From Selaginella moellendorffii (Eukaryota; Plantae; Lycopodiophyta): a stretch of DNA of 64,000 bases. The notes below the pieces were generated by a model. It was not told where the DNA came from and did no database searches. It saw only the letters and a program-made list of their open reading frames with translations. Position 1 is the first letter of the stretch; the number at the start of each line of letters is the position of its first letter. A program made the translations under genes and the position numbers. Positions 1-25,867 of this stretch are shown one piece after another. The stretch is taken from contig NW_003314299.1 of assembly GCF_000143415.4 (NCBI RefSeq), positions 1,223,502-1,287,501 of the forward strand, in the 5' to 3' direction.

Positions 1-66
1 TTCTTAAATATTGTGAAGTTTAGTTTAGACTTACCGTTTGGGTTAGACTTGTGTAGTTCCTATTGA
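1..66 (+). CDS. 3' end of a further F-box gene copy, truncated by the window start
   Basis: Encodes ...LNIVKFSLDLPFGLDLCSSY*, identical to the C-terminus of the 6926-7933 protein. Confidence 0.85.
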   Translation, partial: FLNIVKFSLDLPFGLDLCSSY

Positions 67-606
67 TTTTCTTTTTCTCCTCCACACCTTCTGTCTTGTG
101 AGATATATTTTAAGGTGAAAGGTTGTTATGAAGGCAAATCATACACATTTCTAAATAATTTTCTGTGACACTGGAAACTCACTTCCACCATGACAGCCTG
201 CTGATCCAAGAGAGTTTTTTTTAACTGCCATTAAAAGGTGCTTGAAAGCTATTGTAGAAGAACCAGTTAACCTCTTATTATAGACAAAGTGGCCTGTCCA
301 ACAGCTTTTCGGATTGAGAAATTTTCGTTCCCACTATAAATCTCATCCAGGCCGAGCATTGAGCACAGAATAAGGCCCAGCACTGGAAATGGCGGTGCTA
401 TCCGAAGGAATAATTTTGCAAAACCTTTACTCCTAAAATGTTAGAAACATGGTGTTAAGAATAAATAGGACAAAGGAAAATAAATGTGAACGATAACATG
501 GATCATGGTCAATCTCCCTTGCGGGAGGCTTACTTCCAAGCCTCTTTAGCAGAAATTATGTCTTTTGAGTGGACAAGTTGTCAGAGTTTCGGTACAGTCC
601 TACCAT

Positions 607-843
607 TTAGATCTGTGATAGATGGTAATCAATCACGTCAATATATAGGCTAAAGAGGGCTGAGGAAAGCAGGCAGCCTTGCTTTAACCCAATGGTGTTG
701 GTGATTGAGCAAGGATAATGTTGTATAGTGCCTAGATTATATCTCGGGTGTCCCCCGATAAGCTTTGTCTTGGGACTGTATCCAAGGCTTTCTTGAAGTT
801 TACGAAGCAATATATCTGCTTGTGTGTGTGTGGTGCATAGCAA
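607..843 (-). mobile_element. Degenerate non-LTR (LINE) reverse transcriptase fragment
   Basis: IGLKQGCLLSSALFSLYID resembles the LINE RT motif G(L/V)xQGCPLSPxLF; short and with no intact ORF. Confidence 0.7.
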
Positions 844-1513
844 GTGATCCGCGCAATTGTATTATCGCCAGAAACCCGTCACACATTTCCCTTTCATTCT
901 CTTGCCCTTCTTTTCAGGAGCCATGCTCGCAATTTAAGAGAGAAGACAAAAAGCAAAAAACAAGAATCAAGAAATGAACTCAACATAAGACGCACCAATG
1001 GATGTGACATGTGATCTTATCATATGAGAATTCTTGCTTTCCGGGCCGGGCTGTGTCCAGGAGTTCTCGTGGATGCCCTGATGGATCTGTTGGAGGTGAT
1101 CAAGCTCTCGTGGGAGATGGTCAATCCTCTGAAAGCCAGGCCAGTTTCGAGGAGGCCTGCTGCTGCTCATGGCAACAAGGACTACGGCTACTACTACTGC
1201 TACAGTTGTTGACAGAATGACTCTCAGTGTGTTACGAAAAGGCTCTGCAGAGATTGGAAATGGGTGTGTCTCCCAAGCGTTGGAGCTCGAATCGCCCACG
1301 TCCGCCCGCACAACAAATCTCGTGTCCAACTTCTGAGCAAGACTACCATCTTTCAGATGTAGATTGATCTCTTTATTCAAGCCAGAACGAGGCCGGGGTT
1401 GGTGCGAGCATGCCAAGCGTATGCATTCTCTAGACAAAGCGATTGGCCGTACCGATCTCTCAAACGAGATCCAGAACAAGATCAGCAGCCGGATGTGGGA
1501 GGAGGTGGCCGGT

Positions 1514-2539
1514 TTACAGGCTGCAGCCACAAGGATGCTTGAGCTGCACCACAACCACCGTCTTGTTGTCTTCGACACTCATGGCTTGCATGCTATCACA
1601 GAAGAAGGCAAGTTGCATGGCCTGCCCAACACTAGATTCTTTCTCTACCAGCCAGTCGTGGATGCTGGGACAAATGCTCTCAACGCACTCCCGCGGCACA
1701 CCATCTGATGCCAGCACCAGAAACTCACAGCCCCCATCACGGCGGAGATCAATTTCCACAACGTCGGGAAGAGCCACTACCGCCTGCTCATCACGTCCCA
1801 AACCAGCGTTGCTCTTCCATCTAAAGTCTCCCAGAGATCGCGTCACCTGGAGCCCCATGGCGCCAACCTCGCCCCCAACGCTCACGCCATTCAGCTGGAT
1901 CCACTTGTTCTTCATGACGACCGCACCAGCTCTAGTCGCACGCTCGGCATCGTCCGGCCGCGACTGGACGTTATGATCGATCGTCACTGGCACCGCCTGG
2001 TTGTCCCGCCAGATGATGCAATAGCTATCGCCGGCGTGAGCGATAACGAGCTTGTCATCGCGGACCAAGACGGCCACTGCGGTCGTCCCGTGAGAGCCAG
2101 GCGACGTTCCCGTGATACTGTTCCAGGAGTACAAAGGCGATGTGTTTTCGCGCTCCAGCCTCTCCAGCTCCTCGGTTCCTGCCTTGGATTGCATCATTTC
2201 GTCCATCTTGAGGAAAACCTCGCGGAATCCAGAAGCAAAGTCGCCCTTTTTGTAGTGTGAACTGGCGACGAGGTGCCTGTGGAGATTCCGCGCGCAGAAG
2301 CGCGCCGCAGCGCAGCCGCCGTGGCCGTCAAAGACCGCAATGAAGGAGCTCTTGGCGTCCAGGTCGGGGATCACAGTGTAGACATCTTCCATCCTACGCT
2401 TGGCACCTTGAGTCGCTGCGGCACCCACCCTGATCCTGGAATTCTCCACCACCGCCTTGTGGACTCGATCTGGCTTCCAATTCCTGAACATGCCAAGCGG
2501 ATCATCATCGCGGGCAAGCCCAGCGCTTGCTCTCTTCAT
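1514..2539 (-). CDS. Intronless protein phosphatase 2C (PPM family), 341 aa
   Basis: Motifs RRMED, DGHGG, GTTA, AGDS, DH, TRSLGD, LASDG and EDNKT occur in order. Confidence 0.92.
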   Translation of the reverse strand: MKRASAGLARDDDPLGMFRNWKPDRVHKAVVENSRIRVGAAATQGAKRRMEDVYTVIPDLDAKSSFIAVFDGHGGCAAARFCARNLHRHLVASSHYKKGDFASGFREVFLKMDEMMQSKAGTEELERLERENTSPLYSWNSITGTSPGSHGTTAVAVLVRDDKLVIAHAGDSYCIIWRDNQAVPVTIDHNVQSRPDDAERATRAGAVVMKNKWIQLNGVSVGGEVGAMGLQVTRSLGDFRWKSNAGLGRDEQAVVALPDVVEIDLRRDGGCEFLVLASDGVPRECVESICPSIHDWLVEKESSVGQAMQLAFFCDSMQAMSVEDNKTVVVVQLKHPCGCSL

Positions 2540-2727
2540 GTCCTAAAACCCTAATGTCGGAATTTGGGAAAAGGGAAAGAGAGGGGATCTTGTGGCATAT
2601 TCTACCCCTCCAACAAATCAGGAGCTAAAGAAATAATAAAAGTGATTTGGATAATGTACCGTATAAACAATAGAACCAAGGGAATATACATAGGGCATAC
2701 TTATATATACCAATGCTTGAAAACATG

Positions 2728-3624
2728 CTAACCTTGAGAGAATGCACGCCTGCAAGCATTATTGGCGATCGCCAGGTTCCCTCTTCGTGCCTCGCGCATA
2801 AACGCTACCTCGAAGTGCCTCCTTGCAAGCTTTCCTCGGCGATCCTGTCCCCGTAGTGGCAAAACAAGCTCAAGGAGCTCCAAATCCCGTACGACTGCGT
2901 CCTCCAGCTCCACTGCCCCGATTCTTCCCCCGGGGAGGATCTCCTGGGTCACAGGCGTGCACATTCCAAAGTCTACAAGCCAGACCTTGTCGCCTGAGAG
3001 GTAGAGCTCGATGTCGCGAAACCTCACCCCGAGCGTGAATGCCATGTGTGCCATGACGGTTCCCAGCGCCGCAGCTACCTTGCGCCTGTCGAGCTCCGGG
3101 AAGACGCGTTCTGCAACCACACAAGAAACAATGGGCTTCATTAGTAGCGTGGCATTGTGGATTTTAAACGCAGGATCTTCGTCGAGGCTGTAGATCCAGC
3201 CGCGGTCCTTGATCTCCTCGGGAGATAGGGCATTTTGCCCCTCCAACATCCCGTCTACCAGCGCGGTGAGCTGCTCCTGCTGGATAGCCGGCATCTTCTC
3301 CATGACCATGCACGGTTTGTTGTGGAGCTCGCCCTGACACCTGAAAACCAAAGCGTGAATGTCCTCGTTCATGTGTGCAGTGCGCTCAAGAAGCGCCCTC
3401 CCACTGGGTGCAAAGGCAAACACTTTGGGGACACGCAAACAGGCCACGTCTGGGTAGTCACGACTTAACCTCTCGATTGCGTCCCTATACAAACCCATGG
3501 CGTGCACCTCCGCCTTGAGGTTCGCGTACGAGGTATTGTCTCCTATCAACCGCTTGATGGCGTACTCCCCACCAAAGATCAATCGCCCATTGTTTCCGCC
3601 ATCGCGCCCCGCCATCCACGCCAT
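2728..3624 (-). CDS. Intronless atypical protein-kinase-like protein (DUF3669-like), probable start 3624
   Basis: Gly-rich GGNNG, AIK, LKAE, LRVPKVF, MVMEKM, FRDIELYL and WLVDFG in kinase order. A TATA box at 3738-3747 and a CT-rich leader favour the ATG at 3624 over the one at 3765. Confidence 0.7.
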   Translation of the reverse strand: MAWMAGRDGGNNGRLIFGGEYAIKRLIGDNTSYANLKAEVHAMGLYRDAIERLSRDYPDVACLRVPKVFAFAPSGRALLERTAHMNEDIHALVFRCQGELHNKPCMVMEKMPAIQQEQLTALVDGMLEGQNALSPEEIKDRGWIYSLDEDPAFKIHNATLLMKPIVSCVVAERVFPELDRRKVAAALGTVMAHMAFTLGVRFRDIELYLSGDKVWLVDFGMCTPVTQEILPGGRIGAVELEDAVVRDLELLELVLPLRGQDRRGKLARRHFEVAFMREARRGNLAIANNACRRAFSQG

Positions 3625-3737
3625 CGCGACGCCAATCGAGCCGAGCGGAGGTGCCCTAGGGTAGCAAGCCGAGCGCTCAAGAAAAGAAGAAGAGAGCCTA
3701 GCAACGTGAGCGAGAGAGAGAGAGAGAGAGAGGAGGG

Positions 3738-4035
3738 TATATATATAGTAGAGAGATGGTCTCATTGTGCCACGTGGCAGGAGTACCGTTGGCCGTTGTT
3801 CTTTTGCTTGCCGATGTGGCGGATGCCTGCCAGGTGGGAAGCTGCGATTCGGTACTAGCGGGAGAAAGAGGAGGGCCTACATTGTGCCACGTGGCAGGAG
3901 TACCGTTGGTCGTTTTCTTTTGTGTAGAGCACGTTTAGGTTAAAGGGAGCTTGCCGATGTGGCAGATACGTTTAGGTTAACAGGGGCTTGCCGATGTGGC
4001 AGGTGTTTTGCCAGGTGGGACGCTGCGATTCGCTA
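3738..4035 (-). promoter_or_regulatory. Promoter of the kinase-like gene: TATA box, two palindromic G-boxes (TGCCACGTGGCA) and repeated modules
   Basis: tatatatata at 3738-3747; tgccacgtggca at 3768-3779 and 3885-3896; gcttgccgatgtggc occurs three times. Confidence 0.6.
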
Positions 4036-4399
4036 TTTGGGGCAGCACACCTTTAGCTTAATTTCTGCCTTTAGACATCACCTAGCCCTAACTGGACTAT
4101 AAGCGAGACTTCCATTCTTTCTTTCGGGCGTTTACTTCTTCACGCTTTTCAACGCCATCCAGCAACTTTTGGGTCGATCTGACAGTTGAAATCCGCAGAT
4201 ATGGCCCGACAAAACGTGTTGCTGTCTGATCATACTGGCTTTGAATTTGTCTTTGTTCTTAATCTTCTTAGCATGATCTAGGGGAGTTTCTGGCCCGTGG
4301 AGGAAAAACCCGTAGGCTACAGGCTTTCACGCAAAATTTAGAGAAAACAAAGCAAGAATCTTACATAATCCGGACTTGCGGACACTCATGTTGATTTGG

Positions 4400-5300
4400 A
4401 AAACGAGCAATGGCACCACGTTGAGCTGTTCTTCTTCTGTGAGTTTCGAGATTGGACGTAGTATTTCAAGCGACTTTCGTAACTTCAGCTCGTTTCGCTA
4501 TCGCAAACTCTGAAAGGTATATAAATCTAAATATATGTCGAAGAAGAGTGCTCTTTACATCTCCGAGAAGTGCATCGTTTATTTGTGGCTCCACATACCA
4601 GACATCGCAAACGACTACCCAGGACAACATCAGCTTCAGCTAAACGAAAAAAAAAACTGAAAGTCAATCGTGATGAAAAGTATAAACTTAGTGTGGACAA
4701 TTATCTTGTTTTACTTTGCAGACAGTGAAATCCAGTTCGAATACAATCTGCAAAATCGAGCGCAAGGAAATAAGAACTGCCTGGAGAAACTACGAAATCA
4801 AGAACCTGCTTGAACATCACATTGTCCGCCTTGTTCAGGCAAGTCCCCTCTGCAAAAATGAGCAAAATAGTGCTTTCCGGATCGCTTCCGTCCCTTCTGA
4901 AGCTTGGTTTTACTTTCCAGCTTGCTTTTCGTCTCAACTCCATTGCTACGCACAGCAATCCCCTGCGGATGATCGATCGCAGCCTTCCACTGCTTTTCTG
5001 GAAACTATCACAACTTAAAAGCGGTGTTACGCCACAGACTTTCACCTGAAGAAGACGGTTTCTTCCTCGCAGCGTACTAACCACGCTCCACTGCTTCCCC
5101 TGCTTCCTGAAAACGAGTACAGTGGGACTTGGGAAAATAACGAGAGAAAGGAGCTCCGGCAACGAGTTCCGTTACATGCCTTGTGACTGCCAGGCTCTCA
5201 TAAACAACAGTTGAGCTACCGTGAGACACACATACCTGTGGTTGCTTTCATTATAGTAGCCCGATGCACATCTTTACCAGAGTATCCTGTCCAAAAAAGA
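4400..5300 (-). pseudogene. Degenerate GPAT9-like (glycerol-3-phosphate acyltransferase) pseudogene
   Basis: LLIFAEGTCLNKADNVMFKQ, ELDFTVC, NKIIV and DVWYVEPQ match GPAT9 motifs (LLIFPEGTCVNN..VMFKK, ELDCTVC, NKIFV, VWYLEPQ) but are separated by stops and frameshifts; boundaries approximate. Confidence 0.65.
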
Positions 5301-6071
5301 AGGACAAGGAGATGAACAAAGTCGCTCAGACTCTGAGAATGCCAGCGAGAATGCGGCCATCGTTCCCCGTAGCGTTTTCATGCTATCCCGCCTGCAAAGC
5401 CGCCCCCATCCTTGAGAATCCCCCGGACCCGGACAGCAGCTTCCTGCCCAGCGAAAGAAAATGTTTGACGAATACCTGACGCTCTGCCAGCAGCTGGTCC
5501 TGCAAATCCTCCTCCACACGGAGCCGCGCCAGCGTGCGTGCGCAAGTCGTGAAGAAGTTACTGCACAGACCACAAACTGTCCTGCGCGACTCGCTCGGAC
5601 CGCTCGACTCCTGTATCCAGGTCAAGCCGTGCTCGTTAGTAAGCTCGCTACTCGCTTGAGATGTGTATCGCTAACACCGCCCCGTGGACATCGTTGAGGG
5701 AATTGAGCTGGGGCGAAACTTCTGGCAGCAGATGACACGAGCAGGACATCGTAAGAGAAGCAAGCCGATCATCACCTGAATGCTCTTACCATGTAGGCTG
5801 TAGAATCGGAGGTGACGTTCGTGCCAGAGGAGACTCAAACATGATCAAACCATCAGAGCAAGTTCCCCCAAACTTCTCCAAATCAAGTCACCTGAAAGGC
5901 GCAGCGGCCCGAGTTTGGGATCCGGTAACATGCTACATTTGCCAACACCTGGAATCTTCATGATGGAAACGCGATAGCCATCGATTTACCGTGACAGCCA
6001 GCCTGGAGCCGAGAAGCATGAATCCCTGGAGGGACAAGTAGAGGCGGTGCTGCAGCTCCCGGACCGATCGC

Positions 6072-6102
<31 letters not shown>

Positions 6103-6925
6103 CAGCACGATTAGGCATCTGGAGACGAAGATCTCCAGAGACCAGGGAAGAAGTGGCATATTGTTTTGCAGCCGCCCAAATGCGAACACCAAGCAAGAAT
6201 GTATGCTCGCTAACCTCGTCATTGATGCTTCTACACGTCTCAGCTATGGGGCTCTCACGAGCTTGTCATGTGATTACGAAAAGCTTTTGGCGTTGACTTA
6301 CAAGCAGAAAACACAATCGTTCTCGTCATGCTATAAATGTATAATCACCTATTTTATAGAGGATCATATTATTTGCACAAGATAGTACTGCCCTTCAAGT
6401 TATCAATTTCAGAACTGAACAAACAAAAGCGATAAGAAGCAACATTCCAGACTGGCAACAACATCAATGATACTTCAGGGAGAATCAACTCACTCTGTCT
6501 CATTTTTACCTGTTGAGGTTGCATTTCCTGCAAGATCATCATAGGGTTATCACTTTGTTCATTGTGCCCATTGTCTTAGTGGCTCCTTTCATAGCACCAG
6601 CAACAGAAAGGTATTGACATACATCGCCTAAACAACAACACTGGGCTAGAAAAACTTCCTACAAGTTCAATAGGAAAAAGGGAGCCAAAGAAAAATCTCT
6701 GTCACTTGAGCTCGACTGCCCTGGAACTTTTGAATGTGCCGCCACAATCTGATCAAATGCTGTCCGAAGTTCGTCGTTGCGCTGAAAGTCGATTCCTGAA
6801 AAACAAAAAACAATTTTTCTGAGCACTGCCTTCTTTCGTGGACATGAGATCGCTTCCACGTGTCGTTCGTGTCGACTTTCTTTTAGGCTTTTGGCTGGCT
6901 GACGTAATATGGGTTAGGGCTGGTG

Positions 6926-7933
6926 ATGGAGCACGTAGATATCCTTTTGAAGCTTCCTGGGCCGAGTCTCTTGAGAGCCAGAGCTGTTTGCAAGGCTTGG
7001 AAAGAAGTAATTGATTCTCCATGGTTTTCAAACCGCTACAGGGATCCATCGCCCTACATATTATTGCCATCGCCAAACCAAGAGGGCTTGCCCTTGTGTA
7101 ACATATGCCACTTGGTTCTGGGTAAGTGGTTCAAGTTGGAATTTCCATCTACGTATATCCAGTCGGTCTCTCAGTCCGGGCTGGTGCTGGTCCGGGAAGG
7201 CAGAGTTTTTTGGGTGGGGAATCCATTCTTCAATAAGTGGAAACGGTATAGCTTAGAATTGCCATATGCGAAATTTGATCATGAGCTTGCAACTCTAGCG
7301 GATGATGAGCAGGGCTATCGAGTAGTATTTCGGGTGCGTAGGTTTATGCAAACAGCAGTCCTCTACTCTTGGAAGTCAGAGTGGCTCGTCACAGAGGAAC
7401 GTAAGGAGGATATCAAAATGGAGGATTTTGCGGATTTTGTCACATCCTCTTCCACTGTTTGTGGCAACATCATCCATTCCATCGGGTCCAAAAACAAAGT
7501 GGCACTACTAAGTTGTCGTGTAGACAATGGCAAGGTTCTTTCGCTCCGCTACTTGAAGCTGGGATCTGAAGTACTTGAAGGGCGTTTTAAGCTCTTTGGT
7601 TGGGATGGCAAGCTCTACTTGCTGGGAGAAAATGACAGTCACTTATTTGGACTGTTTGAAATAAGAGGAGAGAATGTAGTTCTGATAAGCTGGGCACCAG
7701 AAAGCATTTCTACAAAATTTCCCTTCGTAAGGTCGGCAAGCATCTACAACAATACTATCTACTGCATTTTTCAAGTGAAGCTAGCAATGCTAGTAACTTA
7801 CAACCTCAGTAAACATGGTTCGTGGCAGGTGGTACCACTTCCAGAACCATTACCTCCGTGCATTGGAATCTTAAATATTGTGAAGTTTAGTTTAGACTTA
7901 CCGTTTGGGTTAGACTTGTGTAGTTCCTATTGA
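6926..7933 (+). CDS. Intronless F-box protein (copy A)
   Basis: N-terminal ILLKLPGPSLLRARAVCKAWKEVI F-box, then SGLVLV...WVGNPF..KW typical of F-box-associated beta-propeller regions. Confidence 0.88.
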   Translation: MEHVDILLKLPGPSLLRARAVCKAWKEVIDSPWFSNRYRDPSPYILLPSPNQEGLPLCNICHLVLGKWFKLEFPSTYIQSVSQSGLVLVREGRVFWVGNPFFNKWKRYSLELPYAKFDHELATLADDEQGYRVVFRVRRFMQTAVLYSWKSEWLVTEERKEDIKMEDFADFVTSSSTVCGNIIHSIGSKNKVALLSCRVDNGKVLSLRYLKLGSEVLEGRFKLFGWDGKLYLLGENDSHLFGLFEIRGENVVLISWAPESISTKFPFVRSASIYNNTIYCIFQVKLAMLVTYNLSKHGSWQVVPLPEPLPPCIGILNIVKFSLDLPFGLDLCSSY

Positions 7934-8473
7934 TTTTCTTTTTCTCCTCCACACCTTCTGTCTTGTGAGATATATTTTAAGGTGAAAGGTTGTTATGAAG
8001 GCAAATCATACACATTTCTAAATAATTTTCTGTGACACTGGAAACTCACTTCCACCATGACAGCCTGCTGATCCAAGAGAGTTTTTTTTAACTGCCATTA
8101 AAAGGTGCTTGAAAGCTATTGTAGAAGAACCAGTTAACCTCTTATTATAGACAAAGTGGCCTGTCCAACAGCTTTTCGGATTGAGAAATTTTCGTTCCCA
8201 CTATAAATCTCATCCAGGCCGAGCATTGAGCACAGAATAAGGCCCAGCACTGGAAATGGCGGTGCTATCCGAAGGAATAATTTTGCAAAACCTTTACTCC
8301 TAAAATGTTAGAAACATGGTGTTAAGAATAAATAGGACAAAGGAAAATAAATGTGAACGATAACATGGATCATGGTCAATCTCCCTTGCGGGAGGCTTAC
8401 TTCCAAGCCTCTTTAGCAGAAATTATGTCTTTTGAGTGGACAAGTTGTCAGAGTTTCGGTACAGTCCTACCAT

Positions 8474-8710
8474 TTAGATCTGTGATAGATGGTAATCAAT
8501 CACGTCAATATATAGGCTAAAGAGGGCTGAGGAAAGCAGGCAGCCTTGCTTTAACCCAATGGTGTTGGTGATTGAGCAAGGATAATGTTGTATAGTGCCT
8601 AGATTATATCTCGGGTGTCCCCCGATAAGCTTTGTCTTGGGACTGTATCCAAGGCTTTCTTGAAGTTTACGAAGCAATATATCTGCTTGTGTGTGTGTGG
8701 TGCATAGCAA
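8474..8710 (-). mobile_element. LINE RT fragment (second copy)
   Basis: Identical to 607-843. Confidence 0.7.
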
Positions 8711-9380
8711 GTGATCCGCGCAATTGTATTATCGCCAGAAACCCGTCACACATTTCCCTTTCATTCTCTTGCCCTTCTTTTCAGGAGCCATGCTCGCAAT
8801 TTAAGAGAGAAGACAAAAAGCAAAAAACAAGAATCAAGAAATGAACTCAACATAAGACGCACCAATGGATGTGACATGTGATCTTATCATATGAGAATTC
8901 TTGCTTTCCGGGCCGGGCTGTGTCCAGGAGTTCTCGTGGATGCCCTGATGGATCTGTTGGAGGTGATCAAGCTCTCGTGGGAGATGGTCAATCCTCTGAA
9001 AGCCAGGCCAGTTTCGAGGAGGCCTGCTGCTGCTCATGGCAACAAGGACTACGGCTACTACTACTGCTACAGTTGTTGACAGAATGACTCTCAGTGTGTT
9101 ACGAAAAGGCTCTGCAGAGATTGGAAATGGGTGTGTCTCCCAAGCGTTGGAGCTCGAATCGCCCACGTCCGCCCGCACAACAAATCTCGTGTCCAACTTC
9201 TGAGCAAGACTACCATCTTTCAGATGTAGATTGATCTCTTTATTCAAGCCAGAACGAGGCCGGGGTTGGTGCGAGCATGCCAAGCGTATGCATTCTCTAG
9301 ACAAAGCGATTGGCCGTACCGATCTCTCAAACGAGATCCAGAACAAGATCAGCAGCCGGATGTGGGAGGAGGTGGCCGGT

Positions 9381-10406
9381 TTACAGGCTGCAGCCACAAG
9401 GATGCTTGAGCTGCACCACAACCACCGTCTTGTTGTCTTCGACACTCATGGCTTGCATGCTATCACAGAAGAAGGCAAGTTGCATGGCCTGCCCAACACT
9501 AGATTCTTTCTCTACCAGCCAGTCGTGGATGCTGGGACAAATGCTCTCAACGCACTCCCGCGGCACACCATCTGATGCCAGCACCAGAAACTCACAGCCC
9601 CCATCACGGCGGAGATCAATTTCCACAACGTCGGGAAGAGCCACTACCGCCTGCTCATCACGTCCCAAACCAGCGTTGCTCTTCCATCTAAAGTCTCCCA
9701 GAGATCGCGTCACCTGGAGCCCCATGGCGCCAACCTCGCCCCCAACGCTCACGCCATTCAGCTGGATCCACTTGTTCTTCATGACGACCGCACCAGCTCT
9801 AGTCGCACGCTCGGCATCGTCCGGCCGCGACTGGACGTTATGATCGATCGTCACTGGCACCGCCTGGTTGTCCCGCCAGATGATGCAATAGCTATCGCCG
9901 GCGTGAGCGATAACGAGCTTGTCATCGCGGACCAAGACGGCCACTGCGGTCGTCCCGTGAGAGCCAGGCGACGTTCCCGTGATACTGTTCCAGGAGTACA
10001 AAGGCGATGTGTTTTCGCGCTCCAGCCTCTCCAGCTCCTCGGTTCCTGCCTTGGATTGCATCATTTCGTCCATCTTGAGGAAAACCTCGCGGAATCCAGA
10101 AGCAAAGTCGCCCTTTTTGTAGTGTGAACTGGCGACGAGGTGCCTGTGGAGATTCCGCGCGCAGAAGCGCGCCGCAGCGCAGCCGCCGTGGCCGTCAAAG
10201 ACCGCAATGAAGGAGCTCTTGGCGTCCAGGTCGGGGATCACAGTGTAGACATCTTCCATCCTACGCTTGGCACCTTGAGTCGCTGCGGCACCCACCCTGA
10301 TCCTGGAATTCTCCACCACCGCCTTGTGGACTCGATCTGGCTTCCAATTCCTGAACATGCCAAGCGGATCATCATCGCGGGCAAGCCCAGCGCTTGCTCT
10401 CTTCAT
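9381..10406 (-). CDS. Intronless PP2C (second copy)
   Basis: Protein identical to that of 1514-2539. Confidence 0.92.
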   Translation of the reverse strand: MKRASAGLARDDDPLGMFRNWKPDRVHKAVVENSRIRVGAAATQGAKRRMEDVYTVIPDLDAKSSFIAVFDGHGGCAAARFCARNLHRHLVASSHYKKGDFASGFREVFLKMDEMMQSKAGTEELERLERENTSPLYSWNSITGTSPGSHGTTAVAVLVRDDKLVIAHAGDSYCIIWRDNQAVPVTIDHNVQSRPDDAERATRAGAVVMKNKWIQLNGVSVGGEVGAMGLQVTRSLGDFRWKSNAGLGRDEQAVVALPDVVEIDLRRDGGCEFLVLASDGVPRECVESICPSIHDWLVEKESSVGQAMQLAFFCDSMQAMSVEDNKTVVVVQLKHPCGCSL

Positions 10407-10594
10407 GTCCTAAAACCCTAATGTCGGAATTTGGGAAAAGGGAAAGAGAGGGGATCTTGTGGCATATTCTACCCCTCCAACAAATCAGGAGCTAAAGAAA
10501 TAATAAAAGTGATTTGGATAATGTACCGTATAAACAATAGAACCAAGGGAATATACATAGGGCATACTTATATATACCAATGCTTGAAAACATG

Positions 10595-11491
10595 CTAACC
10601 TTGAGAGAATGCACGCCTGCAAGCATTATTGGCGATCGCCAGGTTCCCTCTTCGTGCCTCGCGCATAAACGCTACCTCGAAGTGCCTCCTTGCAAGCTTT
10701 CCTCGGCGATCCTGTCCCCGTAGTGGCAAAACAAGCTCAAGGAGCTCCAAATCCCGTACGACTGCGTCCTCCAGCTCCACTGCCCCGATTCTTCCCCCGG
10801 GGAGGATCTCCTGGGTCACAGGCGTGCACATTCCAAAGTCTACAAGCCAGACCTTGTCGCCTGAGAGGTAGAGCTCGATGTCGCGAAACCTCACCCCGAG
10901 CGTGAATGCCATGTGTGCCATGACGGTTCCCAGCGCCGCAGCTACCTTGCGCCTGTCGAGCTCCGGGAAGACGCGTTCTGCAACCACACAAGAAACAATG
11001 GGCTTCATTAGTAGCGTGGCATTGTGGATTTTAAACGCAGGATCTTCGTCGAGGCTGTAGATCCAGCCGCGGTCCTTGATCTCCTCGGGAGATAGGGCAT
11101 TTTGCCCCTCCAACATCCCGTCTACCAGCGCGGTGAGCTGCTCCTGCTGGATAGCCGGCATCTTCTCCATGACCATGCACGGTTTGTTGTGGAGCTCGCC
11201 CTGACACCTGAAAACCAAAGCGTGAATGTCCTCGTTCATGTGTGCAGTGCGCTCAAGAAGCGCCCTCCCACTGGGTGCAAAGGCAAACACTTTGGGGACA
11301 CGCAAACAGGCCACGTCTGGGTAGTCACGACTTAACCTCTCGATTGCGTCCCTATACAAACCCATGGCGTGCACCTCCGCCTTGAGGTTCGCGTACGAGG
11401 TATTGTCTCCTATCAACCGCTTGATGGCGTACTCCCCACCAAAGATCAATCGCCCATTGTTTCCGCCATCGCGCCCCGCCATCCACGCCAT
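10595..11491 (-). CDS. Atypical kinase-like protein (second copy)
   Basis: Identical to 2728-3624. Confidence 0.7.
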   Translation of the reverse strand: MAWMAGRDGGNNGRLIFGGEYAIKRLIGDNTSYANLKAEVHAMGLYRDAIERLSRDYPDVACLRVPKVFAFAPSGRALLERTAHMNEDIHALVFRCQGELHNKPCMVMEKMPAIQQEQLTALVDGMLEGQNALSPEEIKDRGWIYSLDEDPAFKIHNATLLMKPIVSCVVAERVFPELDRRKVAAALGTVMAHMAFTLGVRFRDIELYLSGDKVWLVDFGMCTPVTQEILPGGRIGAVELEDAVVRDLELLELVLPLRGQDRRGKLARRHFEVAFMREARRGNLAIANNACRRAFSQG

Positions 11492-12266
11492 CGCGACGCC
11501 AATCGAGCCGAGCGGAGGTGCCCTAGGGTAGCAAGCCGAGCGCTCAAGAAAAGAAGAAGAGAGCCTAGCAACGTGAGCGAGAGAGAGAGAGAGAGAGAGG
11601 AGGGTATATATATAGTAGAGAGATGGTCTCATTGTGCCACGTGGCAGGAGTACCGTTGGCCGTTGTTCTTTTGCTTGCCGATGTGGCGGATGCCTGCCAG
11701 GTGGGAAGCTGCGATTCGGTACTAGCGGGAGAAAGAGGAGGGCCTACATTGTGCCACGTGGCAGGAGTACCGTTGGTCGTTTTCTTTTGTGTAGAGCACG
11801 TTTAGGTTAAAGGGAGCTTGCCGATGTGGCAGATACGTTTAGGTTAACAGGGGCTTGCCGATGTGGCAGGTGTTTTGCCAGGTGGGACGCTGCGATTCGC
11901 TATTTGGGGCAGCACACCTTTAGCTTAATTTCTGCCTTTAGACATCACCTAGCCCTAACTGGACTATAAGCGAGACTTCCATTCTTTCTTTCGGGCGTTT
12001 ACTTCTTCACGCTTTTCAACGCCATCCAGCAACTTTTGGGTCGATCTGACAGTTGAAATCCGCAGATATGGCCCGACAAAACGTGTTGCTGTCTGATCAT
12101 ACTGGCTTTGAATTTGTCTTTGTTCTTAATCTTCTTAGCATGATCTAGGGGAGTTTCTGGCCCGTGGAGGAAAAACCCGTAGGCTACAGGCTTTCACGCA
12201 AAATTTAGAGAAAACAAAGCAAGAATCTTACATAATCCGGACTTGCGGACACTCATGTTGATTTGG

Positions 12267-13167
12267 AAAACGAGCAATGGCACCACGTTGAGCTGTTCTT
12301 CTTCTGTGAGTTTCGAGATTGGACGTAGTATTTCAAGCGACTTTCGTAACTTCAGCTCGTTTCGCTATCGCAAACTCTGAAAGGTATATAAATCTAAATA
12401 TATGTCGAAGAAGAGTGCTCTTTACATCTCCGAGAAGTGCATCGTTTATTTGTGGCTCCACATACCAGACATCGCAAACGACTACCCAGGACAACATCAG
12501 CTTCAGCTAAACGAAAAAAAAAACTGAAAGTCAATCGTGATGAAAAGTATAAACTTAGTGTGGACAATTATCTTGTTTTACTTTGCAGACAGTGAAATCC
12601 AGTTCGAATACAATCTGCAAAATCGAGCGCAAGGAAATAAGAACTGCCTGGAGAAACTACGAAATCAAGAACCTGCTTGAACATCACATTGTCCGCCTTG
12701 TTCAGGCAAGTCCCCTCTGCAAAAATGAGCAAAATAGTGCTTTCCGGATCGCTTCCGTCCCTTCTGAAGCTTGGTTTTACTTTCCAGCTTGCTTTTCGTC
12801 TCAACTCCATTGCTACGCACAGCAATCCCCTGCGGATGATCGATCGCAGCCTTCCACTGCTTTTCTGGAAACTATCACAACTTAAAAGCGGTGTTACGCC
12901 ACAGACTTTCACCTGAAGAAGACGGTTTCTTCCTCGCAGCGTACTAACCACGCTCCACTGCTTCCCCTGCTTCCTGAAAACGAGTACAGTGGGACTTGGG
13001 AAAATAACGAGAGAAAGGAGCTCCGGCAACGAGTTCCGTTACATGCCTTGTGACTGCCAGGCTCTCATAAACAACAGTTGAGCTACCGTGAGACACACAT
13101 ACCTGTGGTTGCTTTCATTATAGTAGCCCGATGCACATCTTTACCAGAGTATCCTGTCCAAAAAAGA
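12267..13167 (-). pseudogene. GPAT9-like pseudogene (second copy)
   Basis: Duplicate of 4400-5300. Confidence 0.65.
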
Positions 13168-13933
13168 AGGACAAGGAGATGAACAAAGTCGCTCAGACTC
13201 TGAGAATGCCAGCGAGAATGCGGCCATCGTTCCCCGTAGCGTTTTCATGCTATCCCGCCTGCAAAGCCGCCCCCATCCTTGAGAACCCCGGACCCGGACA
13301 GCAGCTTCCTGCCCAGCGAAAGAAAATGTTTGACGAATACCTGACGCTCTGCCAGCAGCTGGTCCTGCAAATCCTCCTCCACACGGAGCCGCGCCAGCGT
13401 GCGTGCGCAAGTCGTGAAGAAGTTACTGCACAGACCACAAACTGTCCTGCGCGACTCGCTCGGACCGCTCGACTCCTGTATCCAGGTCAAGCCGTGCTCG
13501 TTAGTAAGCTCGCTACTCGCTTGAGATGTGTATCGCTAACACCGCCCCGTGGACATCGTTGAGGGAATTGAGCTGGGGCAAAACTTCTGGCAGCAGATGA
13601 CACGAGCAGGACATCGTAAGAGAAGCAAGCCGATCATCACCTGAATGCTCTTACCATGTAGGCTGTAGAATCGGAGGTGACGTTCGTGCCAGAGGAGACC
13701 ACATGATCAAACCATCAGAGCAAGTTCCCCCAAACTTCTCCAAATCAAGTCACCTGAAAGGCGCAGCGGCCCGAGTTTGGGATCCGGTAACATGCTACAT
13801 TTGCCAACACCTGGAATCTTCATGATGGAAACGCGATAGCCATCGATTTACTGTGACAGCCAGCCTGGAGCCGAGAAGCATGAATCCCTGGAGGGACAAG
13901 TAGAGGCGGTGCTGCAGCTCCCGGACCGATCGC

Positions 13934-13964
<31 letters not shown>

Positions 13965-14779
13965 CAGCACGATTAGGCATCTGGAGACGAAGATCTCCAG
14001 AGACCAGGGAAGAAGTGGCATATTGTTTTGCAGCCGCCCAAATGCGAACACCAAGCAAGAATGTATGCTCGCTAACCTCGTCATTGATGCTTCTACACGT
14101 CTCAGCTATGGGGCTCTCACGAGCTTGTCATGTGATTACGAAAAGCTTTTGGCGTTGACTTACAAGCAGAAAACACAATCGTTCTCGTCATGCTATAAAT
14201 GTATAATCACCTATTTTATAGAGGATCATATTATTTGCACAAGATAGTACTGCCCTTCAAGTTATCAATTTCAGAACTGAACAAACAAAAGCGATAAGAA
14301 GCAACATTCCAGACTGGCAACAACATCAATGATACTTCAGGGAGAATCAACTCACTCTATCTCATTTTTACCTGTTGAGGTTGCATTTCCTGCAAGATCA
14401 TCATAGGGTTATCACTTTGTTCATTGTGCCCATTGTCTTAGTGGCTCCTTTCATAGCACCAGCAACAGAAAGGTATTGACATACATCGCCTAAACAACAA
14501 CACTGGGCTAGAAAAACTTCCTACAAGTTCAATAGGAAAAAGGGAGCCAAAGAAAAATCTCTGTCACTTGAGCTCGACTGCCCTGGAACTTTTGAATGTG
14601 CCGCCACAATCTGATCAAATGCTGTCCGAAGTTCGTCGTTGCGCTGAAAGTCGATTCCTGAAAAACAAAAAACAATTTTTCTGAGCACTGCCTTCTTTCG
14701 TGGACATGAGATCGCTTCCACGTGTCGTTCGTGTCGACTTTCTTTTAGGCTTTTGACGTAATATGGGTTAGGGCTGGTG

Positions 14780-15787
14780 ATGGAGCACGTAGATATCCTT
14801 TTGAAGCTTCCTGGCCCGAGTCTCTTGAGAGCCAGAGCTGTTTGCAAGGCTTGGAAAGAAGTAATTGATTCTCCATGGTTTTCAAACCGCTACAGGGATC
14901 CATCGCCCTACATATTATTGCCATCGCCAAACCAAGAGGGCTTGCCCTTGTGTAACATATGCCACTTGGTTCTGGGTAAGTGGTTCAAGTTGGAATTTCC
15001 ATCTACGTATATCCAGTCGGTCTCTCAGTCCGGGCTGGTGCTGGTCCGGGAAGGCAGAGTTTTTTGGGTGGGGAATCCATTCTTCAATAAGTGGAAACGG
15101 TATAGCTTAGAATTGCCATATGCGAAATTTGATCATGAGCTTGCAACTCTAGCGGATGATGAGCAGGGCTATCGAGTAGTATTTCGGGTGCGTAGGTTTA
15201 TGCAAACAGCAGTCCTCTACTCTTGGAAGTCAGAGTGGCTCGTCACAGAGGAACGTAAGGAGGATATCAAAATGGAGGATTTTGCGGAATTTGTCACATC
15301 CTCTTCCACTGTTTGTGGCAACATCATCCATTCCATTGGGTCCAAAAACAAAGTGGCACTACTAAGTTGTCGTGTAGACAATGGCAAGGTTCTTTCGCTC
15401 TGCTACTTGAAGCTGGGATCTGAAGTACTTGAAGGGCGTTTTAAGCTCTTTGGTTGGGATGGCAAGCTCTACTTGCTGGGAGAAAATGACAGTCACTTAT
15501 TTGGACTCTTTGAAATAAGAGGAGAGAATGTAGTTCTGATAAGCTGGGCGCCAGAAAGCATTTCTACAAAATTTCCCTTCGTAAGGTCGGCAAGCATCTA
15601 CAACAATACTATCTACTGCATTTTTCAAGTGAAGCTAGCAATGCTAGTAACTTACAACCTCAGTAAACATGGTTCGTGGCAGGTGGTATCACTTCCAGAA
15701 CCATTGCCTCCGTGCATTGGAATCTTAAATATTGTGAAGTTTAGTTTAGACTTACCGTTTGGGTTAGACTTGTGTAGTTCCTATTGA
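14780..15787 (+). CDS. Intronless F-box protein (copy B)
   Basis: Differs from copy A by 3 amino acids (D>E, R>C, P>S). Confidence 0.88.
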   Translation: MEHVDILLKLPGPSLLRARAVCKAWKEVIDSPWFSNRYRDPSPYILLPSPNQEGLPLCNICHLVLGKWFKLEFPSTYIQSVSQSGLVLVREGRVFWVGNPFFNKWKRYSLELPYAKFDHELATLADDEQGYRVVFRVRRFMQTAVLYSWKSEWLVTEERKEDIKMEDFAEFVTSSSTVCGNIIHSIGSKNKVALLSCRVDNGKVLSLCYLKLGSEVLEGRFKLFGWDGKLYLLGENDSHLFGLFEIRGENVVLISWAPESISTKFPFVRSASIYNNTIYCIFQVKLAMLVTYNLSKHGSWQVVSLPEPLPPCIGILNIVKFSLDLPFGLDLCSSY

Positions 15788-16339
15788 TTTTCTTTTTCTC
15801 CTCCACACCTTCTGTCTTGTGAGATATAGTTTAAGGTGAAAGGTTGTTATGAAGGCAAATCATACACATTTCTAAATAATTTTCAGTGACACCGGAAAGT
15901 CACTTCCACCATGACAGCCTAAGAAAGTTTTTTTAACTGCCATTAAAAGGTGCTTGAAAGCTATTGTAGAAGAACCTATTATAGACATCGGATTGAGAAA
16001 TTTTAGTAAAAATGAACTAAAAGAAGAAATGGAAAAAACTACAAGATCTTATAACCCAAAAGCATAAATATATTCACCATATTTAATTAGCCCAAAATCC
16101 CTAGTTTAAACACAGTGGTTCTACATTAATATTAATAAATGGCATTATAGCCATACATACACACAGGATCAATCACAGGACACACAAAGCATTGGAAAAG
16201 GTCAAAAGTTATCTGGGAGCCGAAATGCAGCACCAGCGCCACACTGTAGACAGAGCTTTTACTTTTAGAAAATCTCAATATACAGAATTTTTAAAGAATC
16301 AGGAAGATGCATGCGGAGCTATGCCCAAATATGAAAACT

Positions 16340-18241
16340 CTACTCTTGCAGGTTTTGAGGGATGAGGCTTTGCAGGAACTCTAGGAACTCTAGGACGTGC
16401 TGAGGCGAATCAAGGCAGCAGAGTTCTCCGTCATCGTTTCTCCGAAACCAGGTGCGTCTGATCACGTCCACTACGTCTTGTATGACAACTGCAACAAAAA
16501 GAGAAAACCAAGCATAACTTATAGCATGCGCTGGGAGATTGATAATCACTCACGTCGCGTGCCTGCATCTGTAGCCTCTGTGTCTGCCAAAGTGAACGAA
16601 TGTGAGGATGGCTACAGAGACTTAACCATAAACGCTACCTTGGGACGCACCAGAGTCTTCCTCGTTGTTTATATCTGCACCTAAGATATAAGCATGCCAC
16701 ATACTGAACGAAAAAGACCGAAACAAACCATTGTTCGCAGTAGCCTCGGCAGGATCGATACTTCCTTGGCGTGCTTGTTCGGACAAAGATGACTCTTCCA
16801 CCCTGTTTATATCTGCAACTAGAACCTAAGTATGTCACGAACTCCACAAAACAAATCGAGACAAACCATTGTTCGCAGTAGTCTCGGTTCTGGACGCACC
16901 AGAGTCTTCCACTGTGTTTACATCTGCAAGTAAGGCATAAGCATGTCACATAATCAACGAGACAAACCATTGCTCGCAGTAGTCTCGGGTGGATCGATAG
17001 TTCTGGACGCACCAGAGTCTTCCACTGTGTTTACATCTGCAAGTAAGACATAAGCATGTCACATAATCAACGAGACAAACCGAAACCGAGACAAACCATT
17101 GCTCGCAGTAGTCTCGGCTGGTTTGATAGTTCTGGACGCATCAGAGTCTTCCACTGTGTTTACATCTGCAAGTAAGACATAAGCATGTCACAAACTCAAC
17201 GAGACAAACCGAAACAGAGACAAACCATTGCTCGCAGTAGTCTCGGCTGGATTGATAGTTCTGGACGCACCAGAGTCTTCCACTGTGTTTACATCTGCAA
17301 GTAAGACATAAGCATGTCACAAACTCAACGAGACAAACCGAAACCGAGACAAACCATTGCTCGCAGTACTCTCGGGTGGATCGATAGTTCTGGACGCATC
17401 AGAATCTTCCACTGTGTTTACATCTGCAAGTAAGACATAAGCATGTCACATACTCAACGAGACAAACCGAAACTAACCATTGCATGGCTTAGACTCGACA
17501 GGAACGATAGTTTCTACAAACAAACAACAAGATGATTCAGAGAAGACGCGATGAACAAAAGCAAAGAGAAAAGAATACAGAAGAGAAATGATATACCTCC
17601 ATCGATGGTAGCTCTTGCAACCTCGCTAGAAGCTGGTGAATCCACGGACTCTGGACAAAAACAACACAACGCGTCAGGGATTCAAATAATCTATTCACGA
17701 AACCACAAACATCACATACCGGCTCCTTGATTTCCTTCCACCGTAAAAAGCATAAGCGAGCAATCGATCATCATACCTCCATCGGAGCTGGAGCTAGGTC
17801 CAGAAGACGACGCATGCGCATCACTTGATCCAGAAGAGGCTAGAGGAGAATCTACACGATGCAAAGGCGTCAGATCGAGACGAGGAATCAGAAGATTCAC
17901 ACGAGAGGACGCATGATCTACACCTCCTGGACGAAAGATTACGAGATATTTCTTGTCATCGCGCGACTTACCAGCGCCATCGCTCTCGTCGGAAGTGTCT
18001 GCGGCAAGAAATTTCCAAAATACGTGAGATACAAGCACAGATCGATGAGAATTTCACTGACCGGTGCGCGTCTGGCACAAATCGACCGAAGTGTTGCAGC
18101 TCCCGCCGCAATCGTTAGCGCTCCCTGCAAGAACACCAGAGATCTTCGAAAATCCAGACAAGGCGAGGCACTACCAATGCAGCGCCAAGCGAAGGAGAAG
18201 AGCAGCACAAGCGCAACCCAGGAAACCCTATAAGACGCCAT
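16340..18241 (-). CDS. Predicted secreted Ser/Thr/Asp-rich orphan protein encoded by a micro-exon gene (~325-330 aa, 16-17 exons)
   Basis: Exons 18241-18175 (signal peptide MASYRVSWVALVLLFSFAWRCIG), 18124-18062, 17998-17972, 17926-17903, 17851-17777, (17734-17720, uncertain), 17650-17597, 17513-17478, 17423-17355, 17294-17226, 17165-17097, 17036-16968, 16923-16867, 16812-16729, 16674-16639, 16583-16554 and 16488-16340. All have AG/GT boundaries and join into one stop-free frame. TATATAAA at 18281-18274. Confidence 0.75.
16639..17477 (-). repeat. Tandem array of exon+intron units with a 129-bp period
   Basis: Unit tctggacgcaccagagtcttccactgtgtttacatctgcaagtaag... recurs; exon ends at 17355, 17226, 17097 and 16968, plus three diverged copies. 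Confidence 0.95.
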
Positions 18242-22843: not shown

Positions 22844-25800
22844 ATGGCTGCCTCGCTCTCGCGGAATTCGTCCGGCCGGGCGGCAGCAGGATTATTGCCC
22901 TATCCAGCCAAGTTCCACGTCGCGGCGGCCTACGCGGGCTTCTCAGCTGACGACGACGACTACGAGAATGTGGCTCTCCCGCTCGGATCGCTCTTCACGC
23001 CAGAGATGGCGCTGCTCTTGTATGGGCTCTATATGCAGGTATGGATCTTCGCCATGCTGGATCGGCAGCTAGATCGCTTGCCCTGGAAATATTTCGGTGT
23101 AATCCTCTGGAATTTTGGGATCCAGGCCACGGTCGGGCCGTGTACAGCTGCGAAGCCTCGGATGTGGAATACCCAGGAGCATTTCAAATGGAAGAGGTAT
23201 AGCTTGAATTTGGAGAGAGTTGGGCTTTAACGTTTCCTTTAGTTGGAGCGAGTTTAAAGAGTTGCCATCAATTGAAGCTATGCGGCTCTTCGTTAGAACC
23301 TTGGAAGTAAGTGTTTCGATGTTTTTTCGAGAGTTTCCATCGATTTTCCTTTGCAGGAACAAGATCCAGACTGGTATTTCAAGTCGCAAGGGAGCGAAGT
23401 TGAGGCAATTGGCGAAATGGTAAGAACGCTTTACATGTTTTTCGTTTTTGTGTTAGGAACTTTAACTCTGCTGCATTCTTTCAGCCTGTGCAAGACAATG
23501 ATTTAAATCCAAGTCTTCAAGAGGAGGACATCCCCGCTGTAAACAATTCTCCTCCATCTCCCCCGCTGCCATCAGCAAATGGTGGGATCGGCACGGAGGT
23601 GAAAATGGAAGAAAACGATGTCGAGTGCTCCACTATTATGGAGATTGATGTTCGCAACGAATGGCTTTCACCTCTGGTATCTGGACGACGACCAGCAGCT
23701 CGCTATCAGGTTTGTCTTTCATATGTGGGAAACTAGATCAAGAACGCTATAAACTTTGGTCTTTGCGCAGCATGCAGCAGCGGTTGTACACGATAAGATG
23801 TTCGTGATTGGAGGGAACCACAATGGCCGGTACTTGAACGATGTCCAGGTATGTAGATTTTCGCTCACTAATAACTGATGTTGGAATTTTCGTCATAGGT
23901 TCTCGATCTAAGAACGCTCACCTGGTCCAAAGTTGAGCAAAAGCTCCCAACGTCTCCTTTGTCGTCGTCCATGCCTCCGATCCCTTCAAATCAGATTTTG
24001 TCACCCTGTGCCGGTCATAGCCTGGTAATTTTTCTAGCTTTATACTTTCATCTTACATTCTTCCTGAGTGTTTTTCCAGATTCGGAAGAACAGGATGCTG
24101 TTTGTTGTGGGTGGCCACTCGAAAAACTCCCCCGACTCTGTCTCAGGTTAATGTAATGCAGAGGAACTTTGAGATCCATCTCACTTCAGTGCTCTCTATC
24201 TCCAGTTCATGCTTTTGATACGGAGACTTTCACTTGGTCGCTTTTCCCAACGTATGGACAAGCTCCGGTACGTGTGACATACGGTATCACGACAAGATTG
24301 ACCATTCGCTGTTTGTGGTGCTCAGATCGCGAGAAGGGGCCAGTCCGTTTCACTGATCGGATCCAACTTAGTCATGTTTGGTGGAGAAGACTCCAAAAGG
24401 CGTTTGCTCAATGACCTCAACATCTTTGATCTGGAAACAATGACATGGGAAGCTGTCGATGCAATGTAAGTCGTTTGGTCTTGCTTGTTTGTATCTATAT
24501 CCTTCACTTTCAGAGGACCGCCTCCATCTCCTCGTGCCGACCACGCTGCAGCGGTCTATGCTGGTCACTACCTATACATATTTGGGGGTGGCTCACATTC
24601 CAGCTGCTTCAGTGACTTGCATGTTCTGAACTTGAAAACGGTAGGCTTGATGCATTGCTCCTTTGAACTTATGGATTCGTGACTTCAGATGGAATGGTCC
24701 CGCAAAGAGACTGAGTATACACCCACGCCTCGTGCAGGCCATGCTGGCGCAACAGTTGGTGATTTGTGGTACATTGTTGGTGGAGGGGACAATAAATCTG
24801 GTAAGTGTATCGTCCATTTTATGTTTGTTTTAACTTCTCCTGTACCATGTCCTATACCAGGGATTTCCGAAACGATTGTACTGAACATGAAAACGCTTGA
24901 CTGGTCACTTGTAACTTCTGTGCCTGCACGGACGTATATCGCATGCGAGGTATGACATTTTGATTGTCCTTGCCGGCCTTTTTCCGATTTTATTGGTCAT
25001 TTTCTGTCCTGCCTAGGGATTGAGTCTCGTCTCCGCGTGTTTGAATGGCGAAGAAACTTTAATAGCCTTTGGTGGCTACAACGGAAAATACAGCAATGAG
25101 GTTTGTTGTTTTTTTCTTTTTTGAGACTGTGACTTGTATTGAGGTGGAAGCTTTCAGATGCATGTCCTGAAGACGGGCATAAGCCAATCAAAGGCGTCTC
25201 CAGCTCCAAGTTTTGGTGGCAGCCATTTTACGGAGGTTGGAGAATCTGCAGACGTGCCCGAGAGCTCAATAATTTCGAAGGAACCAGTAGATCATCAGCC
25301 TACGCCTACGGTATCATGTTTTTACGCGTCTCCATGTTATTTACTGTTTCTCTTTTCTTTCCAGGAGAATGGCGGCTACAACACTCCAAAGTTGCTGGAG
25401 CTTAAACGGGAGCTTGAGGTGGCTCTAACGTCATGCCAAGACGAAAATAACAAGCTAAAGAGCGAGCTGTCGATCACTACGAACGATCTCTCCATGGTCT
25501 TTCTTCGTTTTGTGCACGAAACGTTAGTTCTACAATTTCTCTTTACTGTGCAGGAGTTGCAGTCAGTTCGGGGCCAGTTCGTGGCCGAGCAAACGAGATG
25601 CTTCAAATTGGAGGTAAAGTCAGCCTGCAAGAGAAACCTGTCCCGTAACCTTGCATTTTCTTTCTCCAGGTCGAAGTCGCAGAGCTGAGGCAAAAGCTCC
25701 AGTCCATGGAGGCGTTGCAAAAGGAGGTGGATTTGCTACGACGGCAAAAGGCTGCCTCGGACCAAGTCGCGGCCCAGCTCGTCCAGCAGAAGCAAAACGC

Positions 25801-25867
25801 CTCTGGAGGTATGTGGTCGTGGCTCGCAGGGACTCCCGGCGAGGGAGGCAAAGTTTTAGATTCCTGA
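22844..25867 (+). CDS. ACBP4: Acyl-CoA-binding protein with kelch repeats (class IV, ACBP4/5-like), multi-exon
   Basis: YPAKFHVAAAY, LLLYGLYMQATVGPC, kelch motifs (GGNHNGRYLND, PSPRADHAA, PRAGHAG), coiled coil, GMWSWLAG. Confidence 0.92.

Follow-up and report, generated by a model that had tools for sequence, protein, structure and literature searches.

The minimal kinase families RIO, Kdo/WaaP/WaaY, YrbL and APH/choline kinase are among the described systems to which the locus considered here can most closely be compared. They share with its product the format of a stand-alone protein of about 300 amino acids, a beta3 lysine, an alphaC glutamate, a catalytic aspartate and a DFG-type aspartate, and like it they feature a short helical tail after the DFG motif instead of an activation segment with its APE motif. 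In families of the APH, RIO and Kdo type, the two aspartates are separated by about 18 residues. Plant protein kinases (PF00069/PF07714) likewise present a Gly-rich loop, an AIK lysine, a glutamate, an RD and a DFG motif in canonical order, but add HRDxKxxN, APE and a substrate lobe of normal length (alphaF to alphaI). A putative consensus of fungal proteins labelled DUF3669 is the pattern D.RDVEFVL...W.LDF..C. The published literature on DUF3669 deals only with a vertebrate oligomerisation domain of KRAB zinc-finger proteins, and the Pfam model of that name includes fungal sequences of low homology (PMC6923878), which makes DUF3669 a weak label. A further system of comparison comes from the spikemoss Selaginella moellendorffii itself. 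As described by Maumus et al. (2014, PMC4083422), its EFJ10148 family comprises 23 copies of unknown function, some of them unannotated, and has homologues elsewhere only in one chlorovirus (NE-JV-2) and in a few fungi.

The gene described in the following was found in a stretch of 64,000 nucleotides of S. moellendorffii DNA (contig NW_003314299.1, positions 1,223,502 to 1,287,501), referred to as the window, in which all positions without a further prefix are counted. It occupies 2728-3624 on the minus strand (scaffold GL377603.1) and consists of 298 codons and a stop, as seen from the listing of open reading frames (ORFs) with their translations, a transcript contig and conservation in a paralogue. 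The ORF is absent from the called genes of assembly GCA_000143415.2, and its product was not found by exact look-up in a collection of 15 billion proteins. Codon periodicity (GC3 of 0.68 vs. GC2 of 0.41), a 32%-identical paralogue and the gap-free transcript contig mark it as more than a chance ORF: it is a genuine, intact, duplicated, unannotated and intronless gene of S. moellendorffii. In the reading preferred here, to which we assign a probability of roughly 0.6, this genuine gene encodes a small, stand-alone protein of the protein kinase-like (PKL) superfamily, belonging to a fast-evolving, species-private family with remote kin among fungal proteins labelled DUF3669.

Transcription was surveyed over 4,601 nt in four sequencing runs, i.e., X1 and the three stranded RNA-seq runs X13-X15. 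In X1, an ungapped and mismatch-free contig at 2634-3599 with a depth of 65 lies over the kinase-like ORF, while a separate contig at 1386-2549 with a depth of 13 belongs to the adjacent gene for a PP2C phosphatase. The stretch 3610-5630 carries no coverage in this run, so that X1 behaves as RNA and is transcriptome-like, and the gap-free contig supports the intronless reading of the kinase-like gene. The three stranded runs contain no read on 2686-4379, which includes the whole kinase-like ORF, and cover the PP2C gene (1514-2539) at up to about 5x as well as a spliced gene at 4132-5837. The kinase-like gene is transcribed in some conditions, unspliced and separately from the PP2C gene. Its transcript occurs in the runs coded X1, X2 and X6-X11. 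A fused kinase-PP2C transcript is ruled out by the separate contigs, the five-fold difference in depth and the presence of PP2C reads without kinase-like reads.

At its downstream side, the transcript includes a probable 3' UTR at 2634-2727 (minus strand; X1 contig, depth 65), whose end is as good as the contig end only. At the other side, the contig ends at 3599, which is 25 nt short of the ATG at 3622-3624. A putative 5' UTR with core promoter was assigned by sequence reading to 3625-3747 on the minus strand, where no read maps; it contains a TATATATATA run (3738-3747) and, after it, a (CT)n tract (about 3712-3731). Run and tract fit the form of 298 amino acids, as does the good context of the ATG at 3622-3624, with a G at -3 and a G at +4. 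An upstream in-frame ATG (3763-3765) would lengthen the ORF to 345 amino acids. This longer form is unlikely because its ATG lies upstream of the TATA run, and its signal-peptide-like start corresponds to the translated TATA and CT repeat.

The first-pass annotation had described an intronless ORF of about 298 amino acids with a series of kinase-like motifs, and all of these are present in the translation: GGNNG at residues 9-13, AIK at 22-24 with Lys24, Glu39 within LKAEVHA, LRVPK at 63-67, MEKMP at 108-112, VAAALGTVMAHM..GVRFRDIELYL at 183-209 with Arg203-Asp204, and VWLVDFGMC at 214-222 with Asp218. The annotation had missed the minus strand, the identical second copy, the absence of the gene from the called genes and the adjacent PP2C gene. 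On the minus strand, the codons of Lys24, Asp204 and Asp218 (the latter within DFG) are located at 3553-3555, 3013-3015 and 2971-2973, respectively. The helix preceding the catalytic loop reads VAAALGTVMAHMAF and leads into GVRFRDIELYL with Asp204. Neither HRDxKxxN nor APE occurs in the translation, and RFRDIELYL holds no Lys or Asn. As the same annotation had stated, the protein is unlike plant protein kinases, with no match to PF00069 or PF07714 in Pfam, whereas a receptor-type kinase ORF in the same window, taken for comparison, reached Pfam values of 1e-32 to 5e-36. The substrate lobe of normal length formed by alphaF to alphaI is likewise missing.

Judged by these motifs, Lys24 of the AIK motif together with Glu39 would hold and position ATP, Asp204 in RFRD would act as the catalytic base and Asp218 of the DFG motif would bind magnesium. 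Asp204 and Asp218 are 14 residues apart, with no Asn at the fifth position after Asp204; Glu206, which is a Gln in the paralogue, may replace the missing Asn as a metal ligand. The missing metal-binding Asn and the short catalytic loop mean that the protein may bind ATP without phosphotransfer or may do neither, and an active phosphotransferase is considered possible but somewhat less probable than an inactive protein. The distance from the hinge to the catalytic loop comprises about 93 residues, and the 80 residues following the DFG are mostly helical and contain no activation segment. Strand and hinge motifs of the VPKV and MEKMP type as well as a long spacing between hinge and catalytic loop are reminiscent of APH/choline kinases. 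By analogy, the layout recalls APH/choline kinase, RIO and Kdo proteins more closely than plant protein kinases, although it departs from these minimal families, too, since none of their sequence models matches, the HxDxxxxN (Brenner) motif with its Asn is lacking and the two aspartates lie 14 residues apart. In this reading, the protein is a very divergent variant within the kinase-like superfamily; the finding is a modest one.

A phmmer search of 1.84 billion representative proteins with the kinase-like protein yielded three matches. Two of them are S. moellendorffii proteins, EFJ26715 (5.9e-17) and EFJ27001 (1.9e-12); the third is a mucin and was dismissed as noise. Searches by protein word index, started from the query as well as from the family alignment, brought up no relatives beyond the two Selaginella models, and profile searches with the alignment of query and paralogue added nothing further. 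Likewise, three related-locus scans of viral contigs and one of metagenome contigs revealed no related locus. The RD...W.LDF..C motif, turned into two degenerate DNA patterns on the basis of the putative consensus D.RDVEFVL...W.LDF..C, had no match in viral contigs.

EFJ26715 and EFJ27001 are models at L004:8001-9825 and L005:8001-9167, and the sequences L004 (GL377584.1) and L005 (GL377583.1) represent two haplotypes of one paralogous locus. The paralogue matches the query with 2.7e-29 in tblastn and conserves all five core positions. It is frameshifted in both haplotypes, with different frameshifts and indels or deletions in each, and the L005 haplotype additionally contains about 220 bp inserted in inverted orientation. 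The two protein entries are therefore models drawn around a pseudogene, and the 39-nt "intron" of EFJ26715 is homologous coding sequence. For comparison, the paralogue was taken from both haplotypes as separate pieces, none of them joined, which gave an identity to the query of 32% overall and 32-43% by pieces. Lys24, Glu39, Arg203-Asp204, Asp218-Phe-Gly, the VP.V.AFAP strand and the VM..P hinge are kept, as is Arg201, the residue that, according to the first-pass annotation, would replace the first Asp of the fungal pattern. RFRDIELYL-SGDKV-WLVDFGMC of the query stands opposite RFRDVQLHL-SGRSI-WILDFGLC of the paralogue. With its sole paralogue decaying in both haplotypes, the family is dispensable, at least at that locus. 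Taken together with the search results, the sequences look like a fast-evolving gene family private to S. moellendorffii, and the earlier suggestion of a lineage-restricted family is supported, as the only relatives among 1.84 billion representatives are those of this species.

The resemblance to fungal DUF3669 proteins, noted in the first-pass annotation, is supported only indirectly. For membership in PF12417, a score of at least 22 bits (the gathering cut-off) was demanded in hmmscan, and both query and paralogue remained outside the family. The query had no match even at E<=10, neither as a whole nor as C-terminal pieces, while the paralogue attained 16.9-19.3 bits (E=0.001-0.006) over positions 1-60 of the 66 positions of this short and heterogeneous model, beginning exactly at W-I-L-D-F-G. 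The likeness is carried by the feature neighbourhoods of the ESM Atlas, which are a lead-grade test and whose taxon rows, as the tool warns, are no sign of gene transfer. The closest neighbours of the query are Ascomycota PF12417 clusters of similar length (329-478 aa), which score 0.95-0.96 and have 208-210 of 256 features in common with it (209 of 256 at 0.96); PF12417 accounts for 11 of the 30 best clusters and for all ten best matches bearing a family name. Unnamed Nucleocytoviricota clusters also appear, at 0.95. A remote kinship of the Selaginella family to fungal proteins labelled DUF3669 thus receives indirect support from these comparisons of sequence features, with the 0.96 neighbours and the paralogue value of E=0.001 speaking for it.

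The window contains this gene twice within a tandem repeat with a unit of 7.9 kb. On the minus strand, unit 1 (2-8131) harbors the PP2C, the kinase-like and the spliced gene (the latter at 4132-5837), and on the plus strand an F-box ORF at 6923-7933. Unit 2 (7869-15976) is 99.5% identical to 2-8131 and encodes a second kinase-like copy (10595-11491, minus strand) identical to the first in 298 of 298 residues and a second PP2C (9381-10406, minus strand), whose protein is identical as well. The first 5,418 nt of the unit, which take in both the PP2C and the kinase-like gene along with part of the spliced gene, do not differ between the copies, and all 22 differences (16 substitutions and 6 indels) fall within 5419-8131, i.e., the last 2.7 kb. 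This uneven identity suggests gene conversion, duplication in two steps or an effect of the assembly. Variants of copy 2 (5715 A; deletions at 5835 and 5837) occur in RNA reads from independent plants, which means that both versions exist in other plants.

Further observations concern the surroundings. The gene at 4132-5837 (minus strand) is expressed, belongs to no Pfam family and has four GT..AG introns of 48-68 nt that are confirmed by reads; a second junction from 5722 to 5809, with 11 other letters between, probably stems from the other tandem copy or an allele. Another tandem duplication within the window involves 25053-26447 and 26463-27857 (1,395 bp, 99.86% identity). The neighbouring genes encode an F-box, a G-patch/GCFC and a dsRNA-binding protein as well as a sugar transporter, a P450 and a receptor kinase. 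An F-box ORF element without introns, about 1 kb long, lies at 6912-7937 (plus strand) and 14766-15790 of the window, and the same element recurs at L004:10076-11071, 12210-13200 and 17076-17574 and at L005:10742-11764. Copies at the two loci are 81-87% identical in DNA, and the PP2C gene (70%) and the kinase-like gene are far less similar. With its low GC content (0.45) and low CpG o/e (0.56), this element resembles a family that was amplified recently and may be methylated.

The PP2C gene at 1514-2539 (minus strand) is annotated, transcribed, intronless and divergent and encodes 341 amino acids. It is located 190 bp downstream of the kinase-like gene on the same strand. Its assignment is clear, as PF00481 matches with 6.8e-37 and 128 bits against a cut-off of 20.3, and the RRMED, DGHGG, GDS, SDG and DN motifs are readable. 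The protein falls into a cluster of S. moellendorffii named "probable protein phosphatase 2C 21", and beyond Selaginella, identity to the nearest relatives drops to 30-38%. At the paralogous locus in L004 and L005, a 61%-identical PP2C, intact with 353 amino acids in both haplotypes, lies head-to-head with the decayed kinase-like gene at a distance of 214-300 bp. Both loci have common short flanking stretches and the F-box element in the same order, and these collinear flanks indicate that the adjacency of the kinase-like gene and the PP2C gene is not convergent but was passed on once through duplication of the block. The PP2C gene is an inherited neighbour that was copied jointly with the kinase-like gene, and each of the two has its own transcript. 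An additional PP2C copy at L003:6017-6999 (GL377645.1) is 90% identical (91% in DNA), has no kinase-like gene within 6 kb and may have arisen from an intronless gene by RNA-mediated duplication (retrocopy), or be the source of such a retrocopy, because homology is confined to the coding sequence without any flank. Besides, a PP2C fragment at L004:11279-11609, which matches residues 189-303 of the window PP2C with 45-70% identity, is located within or next to an annotated F-box model and hints at further rearranged copies of the block.

Whether the protein has a kinase-like fold has to be weighed against the view that it is no kinase at all, or that the locus is a transcribed, functionless young ORF with coincidental or relict motifs. 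This view draws on sequence and structure searches. Pfam and NCBIfam gave no match for the query. No sequence match to RIO, Kdo, YrbL or APH/choline kinase (PF01636) emerged from Pfam, NCBIfam or the PDB, and searches of PDB sequences, started from the single protein as well as from a profile, returned only a chance integrase match (E=1.6). AlphaFold models of the query are poor, with a pLDDT of 33 from the single sequence and of 42 (pTM of 0.34) from an alignment of six rows, and almost the entire model lies below a pLDDT of 60. Foldseek against the PDB gave no significant fold match for either model (best E=0.54), and the Atlas shape search reached a TM of at most 0.30. At this confidence, the kinase fold is inferred, and the AlphaFold and Foldseek check proposed by the first-pass annotation did not demonstrate it. 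Among the weak matches listed for the alignment-based model, about 22 of 46 are protein kinases; those of the single-sequence model form a random assortment, in which the 40S-RIOK3 complex entry at rank 11 is the only protein-kinase structure. The silence of the gene in the three stranded RNA runs, the pseudogene state of the paralogue and the missing annotation would also suit a functionless ORF. Nevertheless, Lys24, Glu39, Asp204 and Asp218 are invariant between query and paralogue, and all five core positions are kept in kinase-like order and spacing at 32% identity, the PF12417 match of the paralogue (E=0.001) starts exactly at the DFG strand, and two independent Atlas queries both reach kinase-related families. 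The second of these, a paralogue piece without the N-lobe strands, has neighbours only in kinase-clan families, which are the minimal families named above (YrbL, RIO1, WaaY/ABC1, APH and Kdo at 0.89-0.92, with APH at 0.90 and RIO, Kdo and YrbL at 0.89-0.91). Both AlphaFold models, although of low confidence, place a helix (180-197) ahead of a beta hairpin (205-218), which terminates at the DFG. This follows the order of alphaE, catalytic loop and beta7-8 in kinases. Moreover, the ORF is intact in both tandem copies and shows strong codon periodicity. On balance, a kinase-like fold is judged probable from the sequence, and a non-kinase or functionless ORF unlikely. Of the fold proposed earlier, the core residues, their spacing and the kinase-clan neighbours of the paralogue were thus borne out, while a significant structural match was not obtained.

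The possible horizontal acquisition raised in the first-pass annotation and the idea of a kinase-phosphatase pair concern the origin and the role of the gene. An acquisition from a fungus or a giant virus would be in line with the nearest Atlas clusters, which belong to Ascomycota (DUF3669) and Nucleocytoviricota, with the intronless structure, and with the EFJ10148 family, which shows the same taxon pattern of fungi and a giant virus, is partly unannotated and is a candidate member of the same superfamily. EFJ10148 is not among the phmmer matches of the query in the 1.84 billion representatives, so that any link to the kinase-like family would be remote. Among these representatives, no foreign protein was found at E=0.001, and the viral and metagenome contigs were blank; with no alignable foreign homologue, no tree can be built. 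GC, GC3 and CpG o/e of the kinase-like gene match those of the adjacent PP2C gene, the neighbourhood consists of ordinary plant genes and has neither a viral nor a transposon context, the 32%-identical, decayed paralogous locus attests to a long residence in the genome, and the Atlas taxon rows are not to be taken as signs of transfer. The window with its ordinary plant genes also rules out a giant-virus island. A recent import from a fungus or virus finds no support, and horizontal acquisition in general is regarded as highly improbable. As to the role, the kinase-like gene and the PP2C gene might form a working module, i.e., a writer-eraser or poison-antidote pair, in which a conditional kinase-like protein is countered by the phosphatase. 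The two genes adjoin at two paralogous loci; the PP2C gene is expressed in all four runs and the kinase-like gene only in X1, there with the five-fold higher contig depth; at the paralogous locus, decay of the kinase-like gene beside an intact PP2C is the order expected for a poison and its antidote; and the perfect tandem identity of 5.4 kb extends from the start of the unit through both genes into the spliced gene. Yet this adjacency goes back to a single, inherited block duplication and not to repeated origins, the 90%-identical PP2C at L003 does without a kinase-like neighbour, the transcripts are separate and uncoupled, and the decay of one neighbour equally fits an unconstrained gene. 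A working pair is hence improbable. An extended form, according to which the block would be a species-private poison-antidote or immune phospho-switch, copied as a block, held identical in tandem by gene conversion, decaying kinase-first and being one case of a wider pairing in this genome between orphan kinase-fold genes and phosphatases whose folds are unrelated, is very improbable indeed. The reading as a species-private PKL-superfamily protein, with the PP2C as its inherited neighbour, is retained.

Two deposited proteins of S. moellendorffii, EFJ26715 and EFJ27001, are artefactual models over a pseudogene. If both the fold and the activity proved true, an unannotated, species-private branch would be added to the kinase-like set of plants. 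Its catalytic loop would be unusual, being shortened and devoid of the metal-binding Asn, and the branch would connect a family of this spikemoss with the fungal "DUF3669" proteins, which are uncharacterised.
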